From positions 1,696,024 to 1,760,023 of the forward strand of contig NW_002060955.1 in the NCBI RefSeq assembly GCF_000150275.1: DNA of 64,000 bases, in the 5' to 3' direction. The notes beneath the pieces are model-generated. The model was given only the letters and a program-made list of their open reading frames with translations, was not told the DNA's origin and made no database searches. Positions within the stretch are counted from its first letter, which is position 1; every line of letters begins with the position of its first letter. The stretch is from Trichoplax adhaerens. Taxonomy: Eukaryota; Animalia; Placozoa. Shown piece by piece: positions 9,890 through 63,990 of the stretch. The position numbers and the translations under genes were made by a program.

Positions 9890-12383
9890 GGTATAATAGA
9901 ATTTAGAAGTATGCCACAATACTTACATGATATAGATAAGATCACAAATTATGAGAAGAAAAAGCTAGATGGGATGATTGTAATCAAACTTGACCGGCTA
10001 CTTAAAATATTTCACTTATTTTTAAAATTGGTGATGAGCAATATAAAATACTAGGAATAGAGGATTGCTTTGAAAAGGCATATAAGTCTGGCAAAATGCC
10101 AGAATTATGTTTCAATTACTCCATAAGAGGGTTTAAACTAGTTAAGGATAAGAAAGAATTTATAATACAGTTAATGGAAAGTTATCATATCATTTGCAAG
10201 ATTGAAAGTGAAAACTGTGATCAAAACGACGGGTATGGTCGTCAATATTTTGTGCCTTATTGGCTGCATTCTTCGACTGAGTTACGGCTTACTGATTATT
10301 TCCAGTCTGTTTGGCTATCTATTGGATACGAAATTGCGTCGTATATTCCGGATGGAATATTTATTGCCATTTATCAACATCTTTAAAAGTGAGCAAGAAT
10401 CCACAAGTAGAAGTCTATCATCGATTTATAAAATAGTATATACCGGATTATTAATGTGAGATTATTATCAAGAAAGAGGACTGTTATATAGGCTTAAATT
10501 ACTGCTACAAGAATGTCTTGTAAAGAACTAATGGTATACGTTGAGGAACGTATTAAAAGTTTAGTTAATATGATCAAATCCATAATATGATAAAGAATAA
10601 GTTAAAAGAAGTAATTAATGACCAAATGCCAAAGTTTAAATCTGCACAATATGAATTTTACGTAAAATACTCTACATACAAAGGACTAACAAAAGCAATC
10701 AATGGTCTAACTGGCAAGAAAGATATAATCTGGTGTTTGCTGTGTGTAAGGTCTTATTTCAATCGATAACAATTCGTAAATAGCAACTTTTTACGGAAAA
10801 TTAATTGGCATGATAAAGCAAAGAGTTGAGTGTTAAAATTTTATAGTGTGCTTTTTGCATTCTTGATTTTTGAATTTTTAACATAATATGCCACGAATCT
10901 TCATCTTTATAAACTGTAAAAAAGTAGACTTTTATTTTAAGTTAGTTTGACCTAACTTGTTTTATCACGAGGTCACTGAATAGAGTTAATTTGTAGTTAG
11001 TCTTGTAGCAATCAATTATGAGTATTAAAGAAATAAATCTGATAAAATGTATCTATTATTTAGATCAACCGCAACAAGTTGAAGATGAATATAAGACGCC
11101 AGTAATATCCAGCAGTCATGGTAATTTATTTACTGGTGAAATTTTATAGAAAAATTGACTTATCTTTTGTTTCATTGCCAATCATTTTTCTTAAGCTGTT
11201 ATAATTTCCTTGAAAAAGTAATACTCTTACTCGCACTTTATAATTCATTAACACAAAATATTAAAACATAATATTAAACTTAAACAATAGAAATCAAAGT
11301 TTTTTACCTTTAATATTAATTTGTTCATTTACAATTACAGATCTTTACCAGGAAGAAAATTCATCGCAAATTAGTGACGGTAAATTATATTGCCTAGCCT
11401 ACAATGTCGATTCAGTCAATACAGTATCTAGCTAAGACGATGGTAATTCTTCGATGTTGCACAAAAAACCATTATCGTAAAGTTATAGCTGCCATTATCA
11501 AATAACACTGTTTAAGTAACTTTATTACAACTGAAAAATAGACGATATGAATACAGCTATAGCTCGCTTTAGTCGCATCTTTATTACACTATTTTTAAAC
11601 AGAACTAACTACTCATTTTCCATAGTCACATCATCATAGCTAAAACGGTTCAATAAATGGATAGTCATAAATTGAAATAATTTTTACTGGTAGATGTAGG
11701 AAATAGCTAGCGTAGTGACAACAGTGATATTAACGCCATAAACTTACAACATACAGAAGTCGAAGCCATAAAAAAATTCATGGGTGAGTTTCCAGCATAA
11801 ACGTTTTGATACTGATATGAGTGGATTTATTTTTATCCATGCTTTCTTCCTAGAGACAATTGAAAATAGTCGAAGCAATCTGTCAATAGAAAATGACTTT
11901 GTAACGAAATTGATTTCAGTTTATTCAATGTAAATAACTATAAAAATTAACAAATCAATCAGGCTCTAATCAAATTAATAAATACTATTGTATATTAATT
12001 CACTTATAATAGAGAAATGTTATTCCAGTGTCATAAGTAGAATTGGAGATCGACGGGTTTAATTAGCAAAGCATTTATACCTTTCCGATAACAATGTTGA
12101 TAATCTTAATCGACAATACGAAACTTTAAGTCAACATTCACATTTACCGAAATCGGACAAAATGTTAAATTATTGGCAGGAGAAGAATCCTTCAAAACAT
12201 CATTTACTGACATTAGTAGACATTCTATACGATCGCCAACAACACGAAATAGCAAATTCTCTTAACGATATGTTATTGAGAAATCAATCACATCCTTTAG
12301 TATCTAAATATATCTTAACCATTTTACATGGTAAATATTCTAATTGTGGTCAATTTCAGCAAGATATCTGTTACGATGCGTAA
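9890..12383 (+). pseudogene. Disabled ROCO-type COR + C-terminal death domain, copy 1 (no Roc domain seen)
   Basis: COR motifs QYLHDI, IVIKLDRL, LMESYHIICKI..YFVPYWL are split by frameshifts (ORFs 10096-10386, 10587-10769). Small linker exons at ~11064-11120 and ~11341-11379. Death-domain exon ~12013-12383 (RIGDRRV*LAKHLYLS..KMLNYWQEK..LVDIL) has an in-frame TAA. Confidence 0.75.
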
Positions 12384-12876
12384 GCACGTCCTAATTACGT
12401 GTGGCGACTGTATATAAGCCCGAGTAGAAAATATATCGCTCAGTTGATACTTCTCTAGTGTACGATAAGGTACTATACTTTCGTTGTATGAAGTAAAAAC
12501 TCATAAAACTAATCTTACAACAAGCCGCTTATTATACTTGTGAGGAAGTTGTTAGTCTTACAGTATCTCTCCGTAGTTAGTTGGAGTGACTAAGTAGCTC
12601 GTAAGTTAGTTGATTACTCACATTAGAAGGAGTAGGTAGTGCGGTGTGAGTGACACCTATGAATATGTTAATCAATTGAAATAGCTAAATTAAAGTAGGT
12701 GCTGAATATCCTGAAATGAAATATTGCTAATGTAGTTGCAAAACTGTGAGCTACAGTAACTACTGCATCATTAGTAGCTAATAGTACGTTAATTAACTAC
12801 CCATGCTTGCTCTATAATATACTGTACTGTACATAAGTGTACAATAAATTAATTAATTTATGCATCCTAATCTTAG

Positions 12877-15615
12877 CGATTAATAGCATACGTAATATTA
12901 TGACATTGGATGAAATTAAACAGTTAGCCAAAGATTGCGGATTGTATGAAGATGACGAAACATTTCAAAGTACAGTATGCTACAATACTTACATGATATA
13001 GGTGAAATCGAATATTGTAAGAAGAAAGAGCTCGATGGCGTGATTGTAATCAATCTTGACTGGCTATTCAGAATATTTCGGTTATTTATTAGAATTGATG
13101 GTGATAAACACGTTTACAGATATGCAGGAGTAGATGATTGCTTTGAAACGGCTTATAAGACAAATATAATGTCAGGATTGCGTTTCGAGCACGCCATAGC
13201 GAAGTTTAAGTTAGATAAGAAAGAGAGAGAGTTTATTTTACAGTTAATGGAAAGTTATCATATCGTTTGCAAGATTGACAATGAAAACAGCGATCATGAC
13301 GGTCGCTATAGTGGGCAATATTTTGTGCCATATTTACTGCGTTCTTCTACGGAGTTACGCCTTACTAATTATTTTCAATCAGCTTGGTTATATATTGGAT
13401 ACGAAAGAGCATCGTATAGTCCGGATGGAATATTTTATTGCCATTTATCAGCGTGTTTAAAAATGTGGAAGAATCCACAAGTAGAAGTCTATCGTCGATG
13501 CGTAAAATATTACATACAGGATTATCAATGTGAGATTATTATCAAGAAAGAGGGCGGTTACATAGGCTTACAATACTACTATACGATGCCTTCTAAAGAT
13601 CTAATAGCGGACGCTGAGGAGTGTATTAAATAGGTAATTAATGTGATTAAACCTCATAACATGATAAAGGAGAAGTTAAAAGAAGTAGTGACAGATAGAA
13701 TGCCAAAGTATGAGTCTACAAAATATGAATTTTATGTAGAATGCTCTGAATGTAATGAGCTAACCAAGTGGTTAATCACATAACCGGTAAGAAAAATATA
13801 ATCCAGTACTTGGAGTGTAAGGAATTTTTTCAATCGAAACCACTTCGTGAATGGCAAATGCTTGAGAAAGAGAAATTAGCAGGTATGATACAGCATCAAG
13901 TTGAGAATAGAAATTTTATTATTTGTTTTATGTATTGTTAATTTCTGGATTGTTTACCTGGCTAGGTGTACATACAATGTAAAAAGTGCGCAGGTGGAAG
14001 TAGTACCGAATATTAATAAATAGAGGGCATAAATTTTTACTATGATACATTTTACGCTTTGAATGATGGAAATTGCAATAGTGCAAACTTATATTCAATA
14101 GCATATACAGTATATTCAAAATGCAAGTGACTTTTAAAACATAAACGCTCCCTTCTTGATTTTACTTTACTAGCCATTTTAATTGTTATATATTGTAGTA
14201 GAGGGGAATTATATGAGGGTTAGGCGAATTAGTTAGGTTTGCACAAGAAATTTTATCAATTAGGAACTATAATAACCATAATCGTTTATCACATAAATAA
14301 ATGATAGTTGCGTTTATCAAACCAACACTTTATCGTGTACCGTATTTGCTAATAGAAAATTGCAATTATCAGTATTGAAGAATTTGATTGAGTGGTCCCG
14401 TTGATTAATTATTTAGATCAACCACAACGATTCCAACAGGAATATGAGATACCAATAACATCTGGTAAACTATGTAATTTTATTTGTGTATGAAATCTTA
14501 TAGTAAAATTGGTATGATCTATAATTCATCTTTGATCCCTTTTAACGAATGTTACTATATTCTTAGAAAAAGTACTATCTTGCATTTCACTTATCAAATA
14601 CATATAAAGCCATATACCAAATTCTTTCCAGATTTCTGCAATTTATGACCTCAAAATGCATGATAATGTGAAATAAAAACAAGTTTGAAGTATCTAAACA
14701 GACTATCGTAATGATACTACATAATTTTTGTAAATGCCATCGTAATTAGTCGAGTAGTGATAAGAGTTTAAACATAAATCTCATTTATGCATTTAGAATA
14801 GTGCTATGATAGGCCAAAGTTGCTTAAATTGGACAAGTTGATAGAATTTGTCAAATTGATCCAATCTGTACCATTCTATTCTGTTATATTGACAAGATAT
14901 TAAGTGTAGAGTTCCTTTATTGATAGATCTTAAACCTATTGTACAAGAACCTGCTATTTTTCGACAAGGAGGAATGCAAACTCAATGGGCTATAGATCCA
15001 TTACAAGATGGTAAATTAATGATAATAGCCTATTTGTCACAGTTATTTTCCAAAGAACACAACAGCTTGAAATGCGACTTAGTACGGACAATAAGAACAA
15101 GATCTCAGAGGCCATACCATCTTGAAATTTAGAGCTGCATGTGTGCCTAGGATAAATTTTGACGTAATCATAATATTACGATATGAAATCTACCAGATAA
15201 AATAGCTAATGTGGTGTTTAGCTATTTCAGTAAAATAATACTTTATGCTCTTACACTATTACGCTCAATTAATTAATGCTATCATATTTGCATTTCAGAT
15301 AGTAAGAGAAATCAATGCTTTATCATTATTGCCGATAATATGGACGGAAAGAGGTTGAAAGAATTTGGTTTGAAGTTAGGCTTGTCTTCTATTGATGTTG
15401 AAGATATTGTCGATAACAGTGACGAAAGATTTGCAAAGTGCATGAACTTATTAAGAACATGGTATTCTAAATTTGCTCCAAAAGTCAATTGGAATAATCT
15501 ATTGGAAGCCTCACATACTTGTAAATTGGCAAATATAGGTGAAAAATTGGTAAAGACATTTACTGCTGATAGTAAATTCCATCTAAAATTATATACAAGA
15601 CTGAATCAAACATGA
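12877..15615 (+). pseudogene. Disabled ROCO-type COR + C-terminal death domain, copy 2 (no Roc domain seen)
   Basis: IMTLDEIKQLAKDCG, then a 5-bp frameshift at 12971-12977, then MLQYLHDIGEI..VIVINLDWL..YFVPYLL (12977-13633). An in-frame TAG at 13631 is followed by continued similarity to copy 1 (CSEC). Linker exons ~14418 and ~14927-15010. Death-domain exon ~15299-15615 (LKEFGLKLGLS..DI..NLLRTW..WNNLLEA). Confidence 0.8.
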
Positions 15616-16170: not shown

Positions 16171-16818
16171 TTGTCTGAGAAATGTCATTAGCCCATCCAT
16201 AGATTGCTGCCTACAGCTTCAATCAATCTTCTATTTGTATCCTTTGAGATGGACAGCGAGCGCTTTCCAAATTGCACACTCGCATTCGTCATGATTGTCA
16301 ATGCTTGTATCGACTATTTTACTTTCAAAAGACATCATTACTTATCGTAGGGGCTGAAATCATTTAAAGGTTATTTACATTATTGTCGGTATGGTCATAT
16401 TCTATCTTTCTGTATGAAATATTTGGGTTGTAGTTATTGGATAGTCTAGTATATCAAGGACTGAGATGCCTGTAGACTAACAACCAAGTCTACTAGCTAT
16501 ATTCAATTAAAGCAAGCATACTACTAGGTATTACTGTTCTTTACATATTACCCAATGAACAAGTAAAATTGCTATCGTGCTCATTCCTTGCTAATATTCA
16601 TCTTCTTATCAACAAGGAGCTCGGTCATAGCTTATGATAGTTTAATCGCTACTAATCAGATTCTACCTTGAGTAGTATACCTAGAATAATTCTATTCAAT
16701 GAATGCGAGTAGCAACTCGAGATTACTCATCTTCATCGATTCAAAATTACCGGATGAAGGACCATTAGTATCGTTACTCATTGCTTGCTCATATCCCTAT
16801 AATGAACAAGTAGGAGCT

Positions 16819-17150
16819 TTACTCATGATATTTAAATCACTACTGTACAACGCTATTTGGGCATGATCGGGTTCTACCTGAATAGTATACTTACTTTATT
16901 TTACTCATGATATTTAAATCACTACTGTACAGTGCAACGCTATTTCGATATGATCCAATTCTACCTGAATAGTATACTTACTGTATTTTACTCATGATAT
17001 TTAAATCACTACTGTACATGCAACGCTATTTCGGCATGATCCGATTCTACCTGAATAGTATGTTTACTCTATTTTACTAATAATATTTAAATCACCACTA
17101 TACCACGTTATTTCGGCATGATTGGATTCCACTGAATAGTATATTTACTC
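16819..17150. repeat. ~85-bp tandem repeat, 4 copies
   Basis: Unit ttactcatgatatttaaatcactactgtac..ctacctgaatagtata. Copies differ at tactgta/tactgtacagtg/tactgtacatg. Confidence 0.9.
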
Positions 17151-18263
17151 TCTTCTACCAAATGTAACTCGTAACTATCATTATCTAATAGTAGCTTATT
17201 TAATGGTCATTACTAATGACATTGAAATCACTGCAAGGTCATTTACTTTAGACAAGATCAGATTGTACCTTGGTAGTATACGAATGAATGCAAAGGAGCA
17301 ACTACTTTAGGTACCACATTACTGTATTTACATATTGCTCAATGAGGCACCATTTGCTCTGCTACCATTCAATTCTTGCTGGTTCTTTCTATTATCCAAT
17401 AAGAGTTTGGTGATAGCAATTGGCAAATGATATTGAAAGCATCATCCTGGCAGACCGGATAATAAACTGTTCTAGAGTGTCGCTATCTGGGATCACTCCG
17501 CTTTGCTATAAGACAGGTATCACCTTGAAAGCGGAGTATTTTAGCGCATTGACTTGCTGTCGTAATATCGCCTGTCCTGTAAACTACTGCTTGTTACCTT
17601 GTAGGGTACGCGCCATAGAACGTGGGGAATCCTCGATATCGTACAATACTATTTACGGCGATCAAATGCTACAAATGTTCACGTGGATTAGGATGTGGTA
17701 TTAAAGTTATGTTCGTACTAGGGCTGATTTATTGTCACAGTTCTAATGTCTGGTTAACGTGTATATGATATCGCGCTTGGCTTGGGCTTCTAAATAAAGT
17801 AGACTAAAGGATAGTAAAGCTCAAAATCTCAGATTCTTGATCTCGTTCCACTTGCAACCAGTTCTCGATACTAATACCTACCCATATGACCTATAAGCAA
17901 AATGGAATATTTGCATCTCTGCAACTTGAGCAATGAAAGTGTAGTAAAACCGCCAAAGTGTATCCATCATGTACCGTACAGATATCCATTGCAAACTATT
18001 CTAGTCTGAAAATGGAGCACAACAAGGACATCGGTACAGCAGATCCACATTGGCTATAGAGAATTGTAATCCAATTATACGAGCATACGCGTCTTTAATT
18101 TTTGAATGACAGTATATATCTATACAACATTGATTCATTATCATTATTATTGAGCACCATTAGTGGGCTAGCCCATTTTTATCCCGTCAGTTTTCTCGAT
18201 TGAAAATATCCAACCCATGCCAGGCAGTTTGCAGTCTATCGGCCACCTGCTGCTAATAATATC

Positions 18264-21113: not shown

Positions 21114-21728
21114 TTAAAATCGGGTTTTAGGCTTACTTTGCTCCCATTTGGCAATATTGGGCAAGCTGGAGACTTTATGATAAAGATCACGTAGTTTAGG
21201 ATGACTACACCTTAAATAGCGTTTACATAGATTGATCATACGATAAAATGCTAAATCGGCATAAGTTAGTTGGTCACCAAGTAAGAAATCTCCACCATCT
21301 CGAATATAGAATCGTTCTAAACGATCTAAGAAATCGGGCATAATACAATCGCGAAATTCACACTCCAAGCGTGTTTTCTTTTCTTCATTGCGCTCAAAGA
21401 AAGCAATCCGGTAAAATTTTTCAAGAATATCATTGCAAAAGGCGTCGGCTAACATATCCGCTTTGGCTTGCTCTAAACTATCTTTACCGGCTAATCCAGC
21501 CATTCTAGCGACATAGCGTACAATGGCAGAACTTTGGGCAATTTGGACACCATCGACTTCCAGTATGGGTACTTGGCCGAATAAGAAATCATTTTGTTCT
21601 TTGATGCGTGGCCAATCTTCTTTCTCAAATCGCACATCTTCAAATTCAATCTCGCCGTGGGCTAAAATAAGCCTGATTAATTCAGCGCGTAATTCAACAT
21701 TAAAATAAATCAATCTTATATGTGTCAT
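21114..21728 (-). CDS. Glutathione S-transferase, sigma/HPGDS-like, intronless
   Basis: MTHIRLIYFNVELRAELIRLIL..FEDVRF..DWP..FGQVPILEVDG..QSSAIVRY..LAGK..FLLGDQLTYADL. Likely start is the ATG at 21728; the ORF track begins at a non-ATG codon at 21812. Confidence 0.93.
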   Translation of the reverse strand: MTHIRLIYFNVELRAELIRLILAHGEIEFEDVRFEKEDWPRIKEQNDFLFGQVPILEVDGVQIAQSSAIVRYVARMAGLAGKDSLEQAKADMLADAFCNDILEKFYRIAFFERNEEKKTRLECEFRDCIMPDFLDRLERFYIRDGGDFLLGDQLTYADLAFYRMINLCKRYLRCSHPKLRDLYHKVSSLPNIAKWEQSKPKTRF

Positions 21729-22469
21729 TTTATGCTTGGATTCGGTGTTGATCAACGTTGATGTTGCTGCACATAGACTTGTAGCAATGATAAAATGTTG
21801 AAAAAAAAGCAATCTACTATCAACAATACGCCCAACAGCGTTGACTTTGGACAGTAATAGTGTAGGACTGGGTTGGATTTCCTGAATCGCACACGACCAG
21901 TACTACGACTACTACTACTATCAATTATAGATACTAATAATGACTAGAGCTATTGTCGATAATGACTCTGATGATGGATCGGTTTTGCCTTTCCTTCCCT
22001 TGAAGAATGATATCCAATTGGATTCTACTCTCGTCAATATTGCTTGTGAAGGCAAGACTAGGATCGTTGTGTGGAAAATTCTTTCTTGGCAGTGGCGATG
22101 AAACACTAGCGTATGCTATTGGTTTGACTATGCGATTGATGATGACTTGCTTGGCAACAAGGCGAAAAAAAAAAGGGCACAATTCCACCCAAGATCAAGT
22201 TCAGTGTCAATGATAGACAAGTGAGCTAAAAGAAAGACAAGTTGAACCTTGGTAATTTTGCTGTCAATCGGTTGAATTTTACACCAGTTAACTGACTACA
22301 AGAGAAAGATTGGAATGGCACCGAGCGTAATTGCTGACTAATATCCGCCTCGCCATTTTCTACCTGGTGTAGACGATGAACGTTCGTTAGTACTGATGAC
22401 GTTAGGCGATGGGTTGGCCCAATATATAAGGTATTGTATGATTTTGGATGGGGCCACTTTTCACCCCGA

Positions 22470-23260
22470 TAGTACAGTACATTGTACTCAAGGCAAGGCA
22501 AGTCATCCCGTCCACTTGGGTTCAGTATAATAGGATCAGAGGCAGGTTGTTTGTATACTCAGTATGGACTGGATGGTACTGTATGGGACGGTACGGTGGA
22601 GCGACGAAAGCAACAGAATCGCCTTAAAACAATGCGACTGGATAGGACGTACTGTAGACTGTACACTGTAGAGTACAGTACATTGTACCCAGCTCAAAGC
22701 AAGTCATTCTGTAGGCTTTGGTTCAGTACTGTTGGTTTGAGGCAGCTTGCTTGTACTGTATACTCAGTATGGACAGGATGGTACTGTATGGGACGGTACG
22801 ATGGAGTGACGAAGGCAACAGAATACTGTAGCATTAAAACAATGCGACTGGACAGGACGTACAGTACAGTACTGTAGACTGTACACTGTAGAGTACAGTA
22901 CATTGTACCCAGCTCAAAGCAAGTCATTCTGTAGGCTTTGGTTCAGTGCTGTTTGGTATGAGGCAGCTTGCTTGTATACTCAGTATAGACTGGATGGTAC
23001 TGTATGGGACGGTATATTGGAGCGACGAAGGCAAAAGAAAAGCGTTCAAACAATGCGGACTGGACAGGCCGTACTGTAGACTGTACACTGTGGAGTACAG
23101 TACATTGTACCCAGCTCAATGCAAGTCATCCTGTAGGCATTGGTCCAGTACTGTTGGGTATGAGGCAGCTTACTTCTATTCTCTGTATGGACTGGATGGT
23201 ACTGTATGGGATGGTAGCGTAGAGCGACGAAGGCATCAAAACAACACTACAGTACAGTAC
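22470..23260. repeat. ~200-bp tandem repeat, ~3.7 copies, rich in TACAGTA/TACTGTA
   Basis: Marker gtacagtacattgtac at 22472, 22673, 22893 and 23095, giving unit lengths of 201, 220 and 202 bp. Confidence 0.95.
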
Positions 23261-23964
23261 ACTGATCCTGGTGGTTACAGTGTACAATACCTACTGTACA
23301 GTACGGACTGTAAGTCTGGTATTGTACGAAGTGCTGCGTAATGCTTATGCAGGGAGTCCGGGAACGGATCATTTTTGCAACGTCATTCAACGTCATGATT
23401 ACAGCACAAACAGTCGATAGCACTCATTCACTCGACCAGGTGTTTCACGGATGCACACTTCAGTCTCGTACTGGACGTCGTTCCGTCTGTCCTGTCCAGT
23501 ACGAGATTTTCGACAGTAACATCATCCATGGATGAATGAATGACTTGCCATAACGTCATTCTACCCATTGATAGCTAGTACAGTACAGTACAGTACTGTC
23601 CGTTAGAAGTAGAGTCTTGCGTCTTCTATGTACCTACAGTACCGTCCTTGACACAACTTTCATCAAGCTCATCCGGACCGAGACCGGGACGGGACCCTGA
23701 TGGGACATACAGTACCGTACTGTACTCTGTATCCTTCTGACTAGAAAACCCTTTCCTCTTAATTACAGTAAATCAATAAAATCAATCAATCAATCAATCC
23801 AAAATCAAAATAGTCTCTGCCAATCATATTTCCTACTGCACTCGTACACTACAATAAATTTATCAATTCAATGCTCGACTACGGTAGGATGGTGTTTCAT
23901 TTAGACTGGATCGGAAGAGTGAACGGTTGACCAGTCCACCTCAGTAAACCAGCAAAATAGTCAG

Positions 23965-24431
23965 CATCTCCATCGATGACAATCACTGGCCAATCAGTCA
24001 GCATGCTGTATTGTACTGTACAAGTGTACAGTGTAATAAGGCAGCCCAATAACGCTTCTACACTACCAGTATACCATGTTCAGCATTTCCTTCCACAGCT
24101 GCCGCTCATCTACATGTTTTCAACTCTTCCACCAATAGTATCCGATCATGCTTCCACTGTTGATGGACCTTTCGCTGCCATTGCAGTCATGACACCCACT
24201 ATCCATCGATGACAACCACTGGCCTCTCTTTCATCCAGTGTTGGAGTAGCTACAGACTATGGCCAATTTGTCAGCATGCTGTACAGTGTAATAAGGCAAC
24301 CCAATAACGCTTCTACACTACCAGTATAGCATGTACAGCATTTCCTTCCATAGCTGCCGCTCATCTACATGTTTTCTTCTCTTCCACCAATAGTATCCGA
24401 TCATGCTTCCACTGTTGATGGACCTTTCGCT
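23965..24431. repeat. Tandem duplication of a ~200-bp block abutting the assembly gap
   Basis: gtcagcatgctgta..cccaataacgcttctacactaccagtat..gatggacctttcgct occurs twice. Confidence 0.85.
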
Positions 24432-24481
24432 NNNNNNNNNNNNNNNNNNNNNNNNNNNNNNNNNNNNNNNNNNNNNNNNNN
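24432..24481. other. Assembly gap (50 N)
   Basis: Run of n characters. Confidence 1.
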
Positions 24482-61950: not shown

Positions 61951-62729
61951 CAAAGAGTATGATAGGTAGTGTCCAGATATTTATGCGATCTGCCAAGCTA
62001 GCATGTCAAGTCTAACGAGTATTTCTTGATGATTTTCTCATCCATGATATCGTGGTTGTGGTTTTCGATCGGTAGATGTATTGATTCTACTGACTATATA
62101 TTCTACGAGCGTGATCTTAAGCTCCATTACGTCATAATACGATGAACAATAACGGTGAAAAAGCCATGATGATTTTACAAGAATGCAATTAAAACCTTGC
62201 AGCCCGTTCATGCGTAGGCATACCTAAAGATACTTACCGGAGTGGATGCATCCTGTGCACTCTTGACGACATCTTCTTCTTGTTGAAAGACGTCCAAGTC
62301 CAGTGGTATCGTAAAATCATCCATTGCTTTAATTGGCTTGCAACGATAACGTGTTACAATGGCAACGTGATCGCCTTTTCGAGGCTTAACAGAAAACTGG
62401 ATGTAGACTGCACAAGTTGATCAAGGCGGTAGCCAATGGATGCCCTGGCAATGATCCAATTTGCTTTGACTGCTATTATTCTCAAACAGAGGATGCAAAT
62501 ACTCGCTTGCACAATTGGATCAGTAGAATAACGTTAATGAAACTCTGGCACTTTCATCAATGACCAATCACAACTGATAGAAGGAAAGAAATTTCTTCTT
62601 GTTAGACCATCCTAGTTCTACAAGGCTGAAAAAGGTCGTGGAGAAGAGGAATTTGGATCATCCTTCTCTTGCTTGGCACTCTATCAGGCTGAGCAAGGAG
62701 TTGCGCCAAAAGCAAACATGTACGAGCAG

Positions 62730-63990
62730 GTACGCTACAGTACTGTCCACTGTACTGTGCAGAATAAGCTGTCATCCCTAGGGTGATTTCTGTCTTATTG
62801 ATCGTGTGATACGCGTTGAAAACCGATGACACGTTATTGACCAGCTGGAGGACGTACGGTACAGTACTGTACACTGTACTGTGCAGAATAAGCTGTCATC
62901 CCTAGAGTAATTTCTGTCTTACTGATCGTGTGATACGCGTTGAAAACCGATGACACGTTATTGACCAGCTCGAGTACAGTGTAAAAGCAGATTGTACTGT
63001 AAAAATGTAGAGTACTGTACTGTACGTTGGATTGATAAAAAGCAGAATACCGTCTTGACACCTACAGTACTGTACTGTACAGTATACAGTAATATAGATC
63101 CTGGAGTCGCACACAGCACAGTATGCTGTGGAAATCATACAGTACTGTACACTGTGCAGTAATATACTGTACAGTGTACAGTGTACAGTACAGCATAGTA
63201 CTCTACTAATCTGTACTGTAGCCCGAATTTCGACTACCGTGACAATAGTTTTGCTTAAGCTGTTGCTCAATATTCACAGGCGTACATGATATTCTATTGT
63301 CTAGTGTCTACTCAACGACTCATAAACTGGTAGATTAAGTACTATAGCGTACAGTACATTGTCTTTGTTGATGGCCCGATGAATGCGAGTCATGGCTGAA
63401 ATCCACTGCGGATGGCTTTCAAAATCATATCGTGCCTACAGTACGGAATCATGATCGCATTCTGTGAAACTGTGTGTAAAATAAATGTCGTAGAAAGCTG
63501 ATATACTATACTGTAATTTACGACATATGTTTTCCACGAGCCTATACCGTACTATACTGTACTGTACAGTGTACAGTACTGTGATTTGGTGCATCGGTTT
63601 GCACTCTGGAGTCTCCATACTAGACAGACTGATAGATGGACCCTAAAATCGTTAGCCTACAGTAGACCTACTGAAACAACTGCACAGCTACCTAGTAATG
63701 ATAGCAATGGCAGCTAAGGCTTTCAAAATCATGTCGTGCCTATAGTAAGGGAACCATGATCGCATTGTGTGAAACTGTGTGTAAAATCAATGTCGTAGAA
63801 AGCTGATACACTATAGTGTAATTGACACCTTCATTTGCGACATCTGTTTTCCACGGATCGATACGGTACTGTACTATACTGCGATTTCGTGACTGTGTCA
63901 CGTCTTGCTAGTGGACAGACTGACATATGGACCCCACAATCGTTAGACTATAGTAAACCTAGTGAAACAACGGCATACTGGAAGTAGGCG
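62730..63990. repeat. TACAGTA/TACTGTA-rich zone with a 124-bp tandem duplication (62730-62974) and a ~305-bp duplication (~63412 and ~63717)
   Basis: Direct alignment of the copies by eye. Dense mixed CAGTA/CTGTA/CAGTGTA runs at 63060-63220 and 63550-63583. Confidence 0.9.

Follow-up and report, generated by a model that had tools for sequence, protein, structure and literature searches.

Mixed-orientation CAGTA/CTGTA insertions in Trichoplax adhaerens: probable excision scars of Tc1/mariner-type elements behind the ACAGT repeats

A tandem array upstream of a GST gene in Trichoplax adhaerens contains one unit lengthened by CAGTA and CTGTA insertions, and we consider that these additions, together with the ACAGT repeats of Trichoplax generally, are probably cut-and-paste scars of Tc1/mariner-superfamily elements with CAG...CTG ends. 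The insertions, their polarity, their position at TA dinucleotides, the random orientation of successive units, and the presence of TA-flanked CAG...CTG elements at particular places were all observed directly.

The window, i.e., the whole stretch of 64,000 nucleotides that was analysed, belongs to the 105.6-Mb T. adhaerens assembly (1414 contigs) and encodes TRIADDRAFT_60096. The array is located 745 bp upstream of the GST gene, within a 3.7-kb intergenic region with this gene on one side and TRIADDRAFT_60096 on the other. The main features of the locus are as follows:

21117–21728, minus strand: coding sequence of the GST gene
22329–22366: promoter-like block AATTGCTGACTAATA ... GCCATTTTCT, between the GST gene and the array
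22440–24040: putative footprint island, holding 27 copies of TACWGTA over 1.6 kb (rest of the window: 0.9 per kb)
22473–23300, plus strand: tandem array of four ~200-bp units, starting at 22473, 22674, 22894 and 23096
25479, plus strand: start of TRIADDRAFT_60096

The four units measure 201, 220, 202 and ~140+ bp, the fourth one diverging. The sequence-only reading had proposed that the greater length of unit 2 is due to five-base insertions of CAGTA or CTGTA, each at a TA, and the alignment of the units bears this out at three places:

22754–22760: TACTGTA in unit 2; TTG-TA-TAC of units 1 and 3 has become TTG-TACTGTA-TAC, a derived 5-bp insertion without an abutting unit
22824–22830: TACTGTA in unit 2 (AGAA-TACTGTA-GC), which units 1 and 3 lack; again a derived 5-bp insertion without an abutting unit
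22860–22876: TACAGTACAGTACTGTA in unit 2, where CG-TACTGTA has become CG-TACAGTACAGTACTGTA

At the last place, two CAGTA were added in front of an older CTGTA unit of opposite orientation. The extra 5 + 5 + 10 = 20 bases thus explain the difference in length from the other units. The position 22824 is occupied by TC and AA in the other units, and an ancestral TA would have to be assumed there. Pairwise identities gave the unit tree ((u2,u3),u4,u1), with units 2 and 3 being 93–94% identical; because the tree pairs unit 2 with unit 3, the states private to unit 2 are derived insertions and not three parallel deletions. The strain H2 carries the same array structure, with zero indels across 22175–23524. 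A genome search found the array at one locus only, and the ~200-bp unit was therefore rejected as a mobile element in its own right.

We then listed indels regardless of motif in five kinds of comparison: between tandem-array units (264 kb), between two COR paralogues of the window, within a MITE family, between the members of two haplotig or duplicate pairs, and between H1 and H2 (36.9 kb). Across all five, the 5-bp indels were exclusively CWGTA-type (11 of 11) and occurred in both orientations, as the sequence-only reading had expected, so that no other pentamer competes with them. Six of the eleven lie at a TA without an abutting unit, which means that these insertions are not confined to the vicinity of an identical pentamer. 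All remaining indels were homopolymer or tandem-duplication events of 1–4, 6, 8 or 10 bp, or copy-number changes of longer repeats. Sister units, paralogues and MITE copies, or else the second strain, retain pre-insertion states with a single TA, namely TTG-TA-TAC, AG-TA-TG, G-TA-AAC, CG-TA-CTG, TG-TA-CAA, AC-TA-GA and AAA-TA-TTA.

Sequence comparison firmly supports insertion as the direction of change in three settings, i.e., the unit tree, a COR gene copy and the MITE copy L043; the intact gene paralogues and the other MITE copies thereby agree with the unit tree in making the longer states derived, in line with the original proposal. Two features of the window bear on indels outside the ~200-bp array:

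12971–12977, plus strand: TACAGTA in a copy of the ROCO/COR gene family, with five extra bases (12972–12976) that cause a frameshift
16818–17158, plus strand: 87-bp tandem array with a CAGTG insertion in units 2 and 3, absent from units 1 and 4

In the COR copy, AG-TA-TG has become AG-TACAGTA-TG, and the pieces 12876–12971 (32 aa) and 12977–13633 are 5 nt apart. At least six intact paralogues, whose open frames measure 737–894 aa (e.g., C1389:86444|86443), have these two pieces side by side in one reading frame, the contiguity being judged by coordinates and open-frame lengths. The closest other unit is 140 bp off. In the MITE family, TACAGTA is present within the right terminal repeat of copy L043 and absent from copies L042, L044 and L036. 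The insertion of the 87-bp array (5 bp, or 4 bp in unit 3) follows the TA of a TACTGTA and has the opposite orientation. As for the gene family itself, the stretches 9908–10880 and 12876–13633 of the window hold two tandem copies, truncated or broken, from a large ROCO/COR family of single-exon genes, which has more than 40 paralogues genome-wide with open frames of 700–900 aa.

The unit that these insertions create is the most abundant word of its length. TACWGTA was the top 7-mer in the window (108 observed vs. 14 expected) and in an independent 200-kb sample of twenty evenly spaced 10-kb pieces of the largest scaffold (L016–L035; 264 kb together with the window), where its count of 407 exceeded that of every A/T-only word in this genome of 31% G+C. 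Same-composition TA-NNN-TA controls reached 45–59 in the same sample. Since the second-ranked NN-CAG-NN word was found only 73 times, the enriched object is TA-CWG-TA rather than any phase of ACAGT. Isolated copies, defined by the lack of a unit 5-mer within 40 bp, were 3.3 times as frequent as controls (101 vs. 21–37 in 264 kb). Their flanks favour A at position −1 (0.47, T 0.14) and T at +1 (0.44) and lack a G/C preference, so GTACWGTAC is a mere by-product of stacking. The units are concentrated in islands, and another one lies near the end of the window:

62700–63900: second putative footprint island, with 24 TACWGTA

A 7-bp variant of the unit, the 9-mer TACACTGTA/TACAGTGTA, was 11-fold enriched in the 264 kb and makes up about one-tenth of unit junctions; it would fit a 5-nt-overhang joint of putative CAGTG-ended elements. 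The words TACGCGTA and TACGCGTATA were likewise 6- to 25-fold enriched in the 264 kb. The ratio of one-mismatch derivatives to perfect copies was ~1.2, which suggests a typical scar age near 0.1–0.15 substitutions per site, a rough value that is inflated by the 7-bp variants. The excess of ACAGT in Trichoplax, which the sequence-only reading had named correctly, was published by Wang et al. (2010, Biol Direct 5:18; PMC2871265), who found it concentrated upstream of genes, proposed a role in transcription factor binding, and called the transposons of this genome inactive. A literature search for publications tying the ACAGT excess of Trichoplax to excision footprints returned none.

The arrangement of stacked units argues directly on how they arise. 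Among units at 5-bp spacing in the 264 kb, 58 neighbour pairs were mixed and 55 had the same orientation, with neighbour transitions (AA 27, TT 28, AT 33, TA 25), triplet patterns (SS 11, MM 11, SM 11, MS 10) and totals (251 TACAGTA, 264 TACTGTA) equally balanced; perfect runs were only as frequent as coin flips predict. The statistical independence of neighbour orientation rules out slippage as the builder of these arrays, which upholds the earlier argument that slippage is unable to produce mixed orientation. The centre of each unit is as random as a tossed coin and independent of its neighbours, which is what the A:A mismatch repair model set out below predicts. Arrays of one to five units numbered 332, 42, 16, 9 and 3, five being the longest in 264 kb, and the chance of a further unit rose from 0.17 for singletons to 0.40–0.43 for arrays of two to three units. 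Adjacency exceeded random TA targeting about tenfold (113 observed vs. ~11 expected from 27,371 TAs). This excess and the rising chance of gain indicate that existing units attract new ones.

Comparison with H2 extends the picture to alleles. Three sites in the island beyond the array differ between the strains:

23576–23599: short stacked array; relative to H2, the count differs by one 5-bp unit, and one unit is turned round
23742–23743: plain TA (CTGAC-TA-GAAAA) where H2 has TACTGTA, a TA/TACTGTA polymorphism without an abutting unit
23760–23770: TAAT followed by TACAGTA, where H2 has four stacked units and a ~125-bp 5' fragment of the CAGCATGTTTAC MITE family (L015:7870-8035)

H1 and H2 are only 0.8% apart, yet they show several unit differences, all within the 23.5–24.0 kb island. 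In a 99.1%-identical haplotig pair, 450 bp contained five unit-type indels and four substitutions; in both comparisons, unit indels accumulate in the islands at a higher rate than substitutions. Because alleles this close already differ by several units, the process is taken to be recent or ongoing and strongly focused on islands. Near-identical alleles also differ by 10-, 15- and up to 22-bp multi-unit steps and by orientation flips of single units, and some of the 10–22-bp steps may be deletions or array instability on top of unit gain.

An additional 143 bases are present in H2 at window position 23762, at a distance of 500 bp from the array. The H2 element is cut short and its junctions are rearranged, so neither an empty site nor a scar could be called for this polymorphism, and in no allele pair of the reachable H1/H2 comparisons did an element in one allele face a clean additional unit in its counterpart. 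Further along the intergenic region, a ~255-bp tandem repeat (24050–24481) ends in a 50-N assembly gap (24432–24481); its copy number is different in H2, resulting in alignment indels of 179, 62 and 107 bp.

The 143-bp segment led to the elements themselves. It has at least 16 relatives of 85–96% identity across the H1 genome, and the search for TA-flanked CAG...CTG elements proposed by the sequence-only reading was thus successful. Members of subfamily A are 185–227 bp long, with terminal inverted repeats that begin CAGCATGTTTAC and end GTAAACATGCTG, and the configuration TA|CAGCATGTTTAC...GTAAACATGCTG|TA was seen in three independent insertions (L036, L042/L044 and L043). A second subfamily has kept only the left 115 bp. 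A TA precedes the left end in nine of ten resolvable cases, and CAGTA or CTGTA precedes it in seven of nine; several copies are embedded in long stacks of units. Examples of intact copies are G000:C1405:226814-227005 and C1403:1007621-1007842. The family has few members: an exact 14-mer end occurs 15 times in the genome and is absent from the 264 kb of unbiased sequence, and the family is probably the single MITE family counted by Wang et al. or one of their five Repbase non-autonomous elements. A generic scan for inverted TA-CAG...CTG-TA ends in the window, the sample and H2 returned matches at chance level only. In metagenomes, the MITE end gave five chance matches on unrelated microbial contigs with 0–0.25 TACWGTA per kb, which serve only as a negative control; a sixth contig (L058), labelled human-gut metagenome, was excluded from the analysis.

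Two duplicated loci add detail on this family. A small scaffold (L044, C1228) duplicates part of a large one (L042, G000:C1405:226 kb) at 94–98% identity; the duplicated part contains a 125-bp tandem repeat as well as the MITE, and the flanking stacks differ in unit number and in the centre base of one 7-bp unit; the small scaffold is probably an unmerged haplotype of the L042 region. A second MITE-like element of ~220 bp (L037:449-672, G000:C248), with terminal inverted repeats starting GTACAAATAAT, was found beside a CAGCATGTTTAC element, within a 450-bp segment that is missing from the allelic or duplicate locus L041.

The enzyme that would mobilize such elements is represented by candidates only. 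The sequence-only reading had proposed looking for a DD34E transposase, and a genome search for an autonomous element or a DD34E transposase with matching terminal repeats was negative; it recovered only open reading frames that lack terminal repeats. Four HTH_Tnp_Tc3_2 matches correspond to fragments or short frames. The intact ORF of 358 aa at L050:895-1971 (G000:C1409:3537595-3538671), which has HTH and DDE_3 domains and in which the first catalytic Asp is apparently Ala (IIWIAEISF), looks like a domesticated IS630/Tc1-type transposase. Three intact pogo/Tigger-like ORFs of 419–550 aa (L051:1042-2691, L052:859-2115 and L053:1396-2673) combine HTH_Tnp_Tc5 or Psq with DDE_1, one of them also with CENP-B_N, and may represent either domesticated genes or trans-acting transposases of the MITEs. 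No sequence was shared between the Tc1-like and pogo-like ORFs (L011–L014, L050–L053) and the MITE ends.

The locus was also compared with more distant sequences. A metagenomic contig from a distant placozoan (L054) carries GST DNA that is 83% identical and a cluster of TACWGTA at the same upstream place. The block at 22329–22366 can be aligned with it (reverse strand, ~340–390 bp from the L054 3' end), whereas the ACAGT units and the DNA surrounding the block showed no alignment with this contig. Within the block, GCCATTTTCT presumably resembles a YY1-type site. A Logan contig with 50% protein identity (L055) was discarded as uninformative, its TACAGTA copies being in-frame Ala-Thr-Val codons.

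The explanation that we favour would proceed as follows. An element would integrate at a TA, which would be duplicated. On excision, the transposase would cut the non-transferred strand 3 nt inside each end, leaving flanks that keep the TA and a 3-nt overhang; the overhangs would pair with a central A:A mismatch, the repair of which would yield TACAGTA or TACTGTA at random, with a net gain of 5 bp. Each scar would then offer two CWG-flanked TAs, apparently preferred targets, and this preference would explain why scars stack, at 5-bp spacing and in random orientation, in certain intergenic or promoter islands. The 7-bp product is the canonical footprint of Sleeping Beauty, a CAG-ended element with a 3-nt stagger (PMC6943129), as the sequence-only reading had correctly stated; given such a stagger, the CAGCATGTTTAC family would leave exactly this product on excision. 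We infer that the units were left by such elements as they excised, and that the genome has, or had until recently, a source of transposase; its lineage could be either a Sleeping-Beauty-type Tc1 or some other Tc1/mariner/pogo group that combines CAG ends with a 3-nt stagger. The footprint interpretation of the earlier reading is partly supported: it stands as regards insertion, TA site, orientation and the presence of elements, whereas the DD34E transposase with matching ends did not materialize. Hairpin or P-nucleotide scars (hAT/Transib-type) and 5-bp target duplications were rejected, as they would duplicate the target directly instead of adding CWG.

Several observations weigh on the other side. 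A density of ~2 units per kb implies roughly 200,000 scars, which sits uneasily with such a small MITE family. The excess of unit indels over substitutions in 99%-identical haplotigs calls for either a very active enzyme today or extra instability of the arrays, and the MITEs that abut arrays could reflect targeting of arrays instead of their making. The most far-reaching form of the excision scenario, in which low-copy TA/CAG-ended elements still hop, driven by one of the domesticated-looking Tc1/pogo genes, and have left more than 100,000 scars in autocatalytic piles in open promoter DNA, is one that we offer tentatively; in this scenario, a genome long described as lacking active transposons would owe its dominant simple repeat, and perhaps a regulatory feature, to these piles. 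Rather unlikely, in our judgement, is that a repair or replication process makes the units, with breaks near quasi-palindromic GTAC-W-GTAC arrays being healed by templated synthesis or strand switching, and MITEs merely targeting the result. A possible template, i.e., a matching TACWGTA 9–46 bp away, is available for five of the six insertions without an abutting unit; the single-unit flips and 10–22-bp steps between near-identical alleles would also suit such a process, the search for an active transposase was negative, and array-targeting MITEs occur in other genomes (Micron in the TA repeats of rice). Templated repair, however, gives variable lengths and junctions, whereas the inserts seen here are always 5 bp or multiples and TA-bounded. 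The distance of 140 bp between the COR insertion and its closest unit, and the ~100 isolated copies at 3.3 times the control frequency, also argue against templating from nearby. Orientation independence and the TA + CWG + TA anatomy are specific predictions of footprints, and TA-flanked CAG...CTG elements are present in the genome.

An ordinary (ACAGT)n microsatellite, built by slippage and kept in promoters by selection as a cluster of transcription factor binding sites, would account for the concentration of units in intergenic and 5' regions (reported in 2010 and evident in the islands of the window), for the island at the equivalent upstream place in the distant placozoan, which fits a selected function as well, and for those multi-unit indels that lengthen same-orientation runs. 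We nevertheless hold this origin of the units to be highly improbable, and the data contradict it. Slippage copies orientation, yet the neighbours split into 58 mixed and 55 same without run structure, and arrays do not exceed five units in 264 kb. New units appear at plain TAs, within coding sequence and in a MITE end, and the islands outpace substitutions, whereas the adjoining promoter block can be aligned across species. The islands may have a secondary regulatory role. Cut-and-paste excision remains the reading that we prefer for the origin of the units.

If this reading is true, it would provide a mechanism for a 16-year-old oddity, namely the sole animal genome with a pentanucleotide as its commonest microsatellite, and it would mean that a repeat class can arise throughout a genome from nothing but excision scars. 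A low transposon content could then mask long, possibly ongoing cut-and-paste activity, because such elements leave scars and not copies. From counts of TACWGTA one could read the places and times at which elements landed, and the promoter islands of Trichoplax, an early-branching animal, would lend themselves to work on target choice and end-joining repair in a natural setting.

Compared with the footprints of Sleeping Beauty and other Tc1-like elements with a 3-nt stagger, the Trichoplax units represent the same 7-bp product at TA, with A and T about equally frequent at the centre and a net gain of 5 bp. Sleeping Beauty-type footprints, however, are single scars at known donors, while those proposed here occur at ~2 per kb genome-wide, are stacked, and have a candidate transposase only. 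The (ACAGT)n microsatellite described by Wang et al. (2010) belongs to this sequence class and to this genome, and it agrees in abundance and in position upstream of genes; that study included no mechanism, orientation analysis or link to the one MITE family that it counted. New here are the statistics on unit orientation, the insertions of known polarity in a gene and in a MITE, and the TA-flanked, CAG-ended MITE family with a copy found only in H2.

As in Tc1/mariner MITEs (Stowaway/Tourist-like), the Trichoplax family is non-coding, 185–227 bp long, with CAG-starting terminal inverted repeats of 12–20 bp and a TA on both sides; unlike them, it has a very low copy number, includes a subfamily reduced to its left end, and is embedded in CWGTA stacks. 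Transposons associated with microsatellites are known from other genomes as well: Micron in (TA)n of rice, mini-me in Drosophila, and the retroposon poly-A tails that seed A-rich repeats. These systems share with Trichoplax the association of element and repeat and a proposed role in repeat birth. In them, however, the repeat is the target or an internal part of the element, whereas in Trichoplax the units would be the excision scars themselves.
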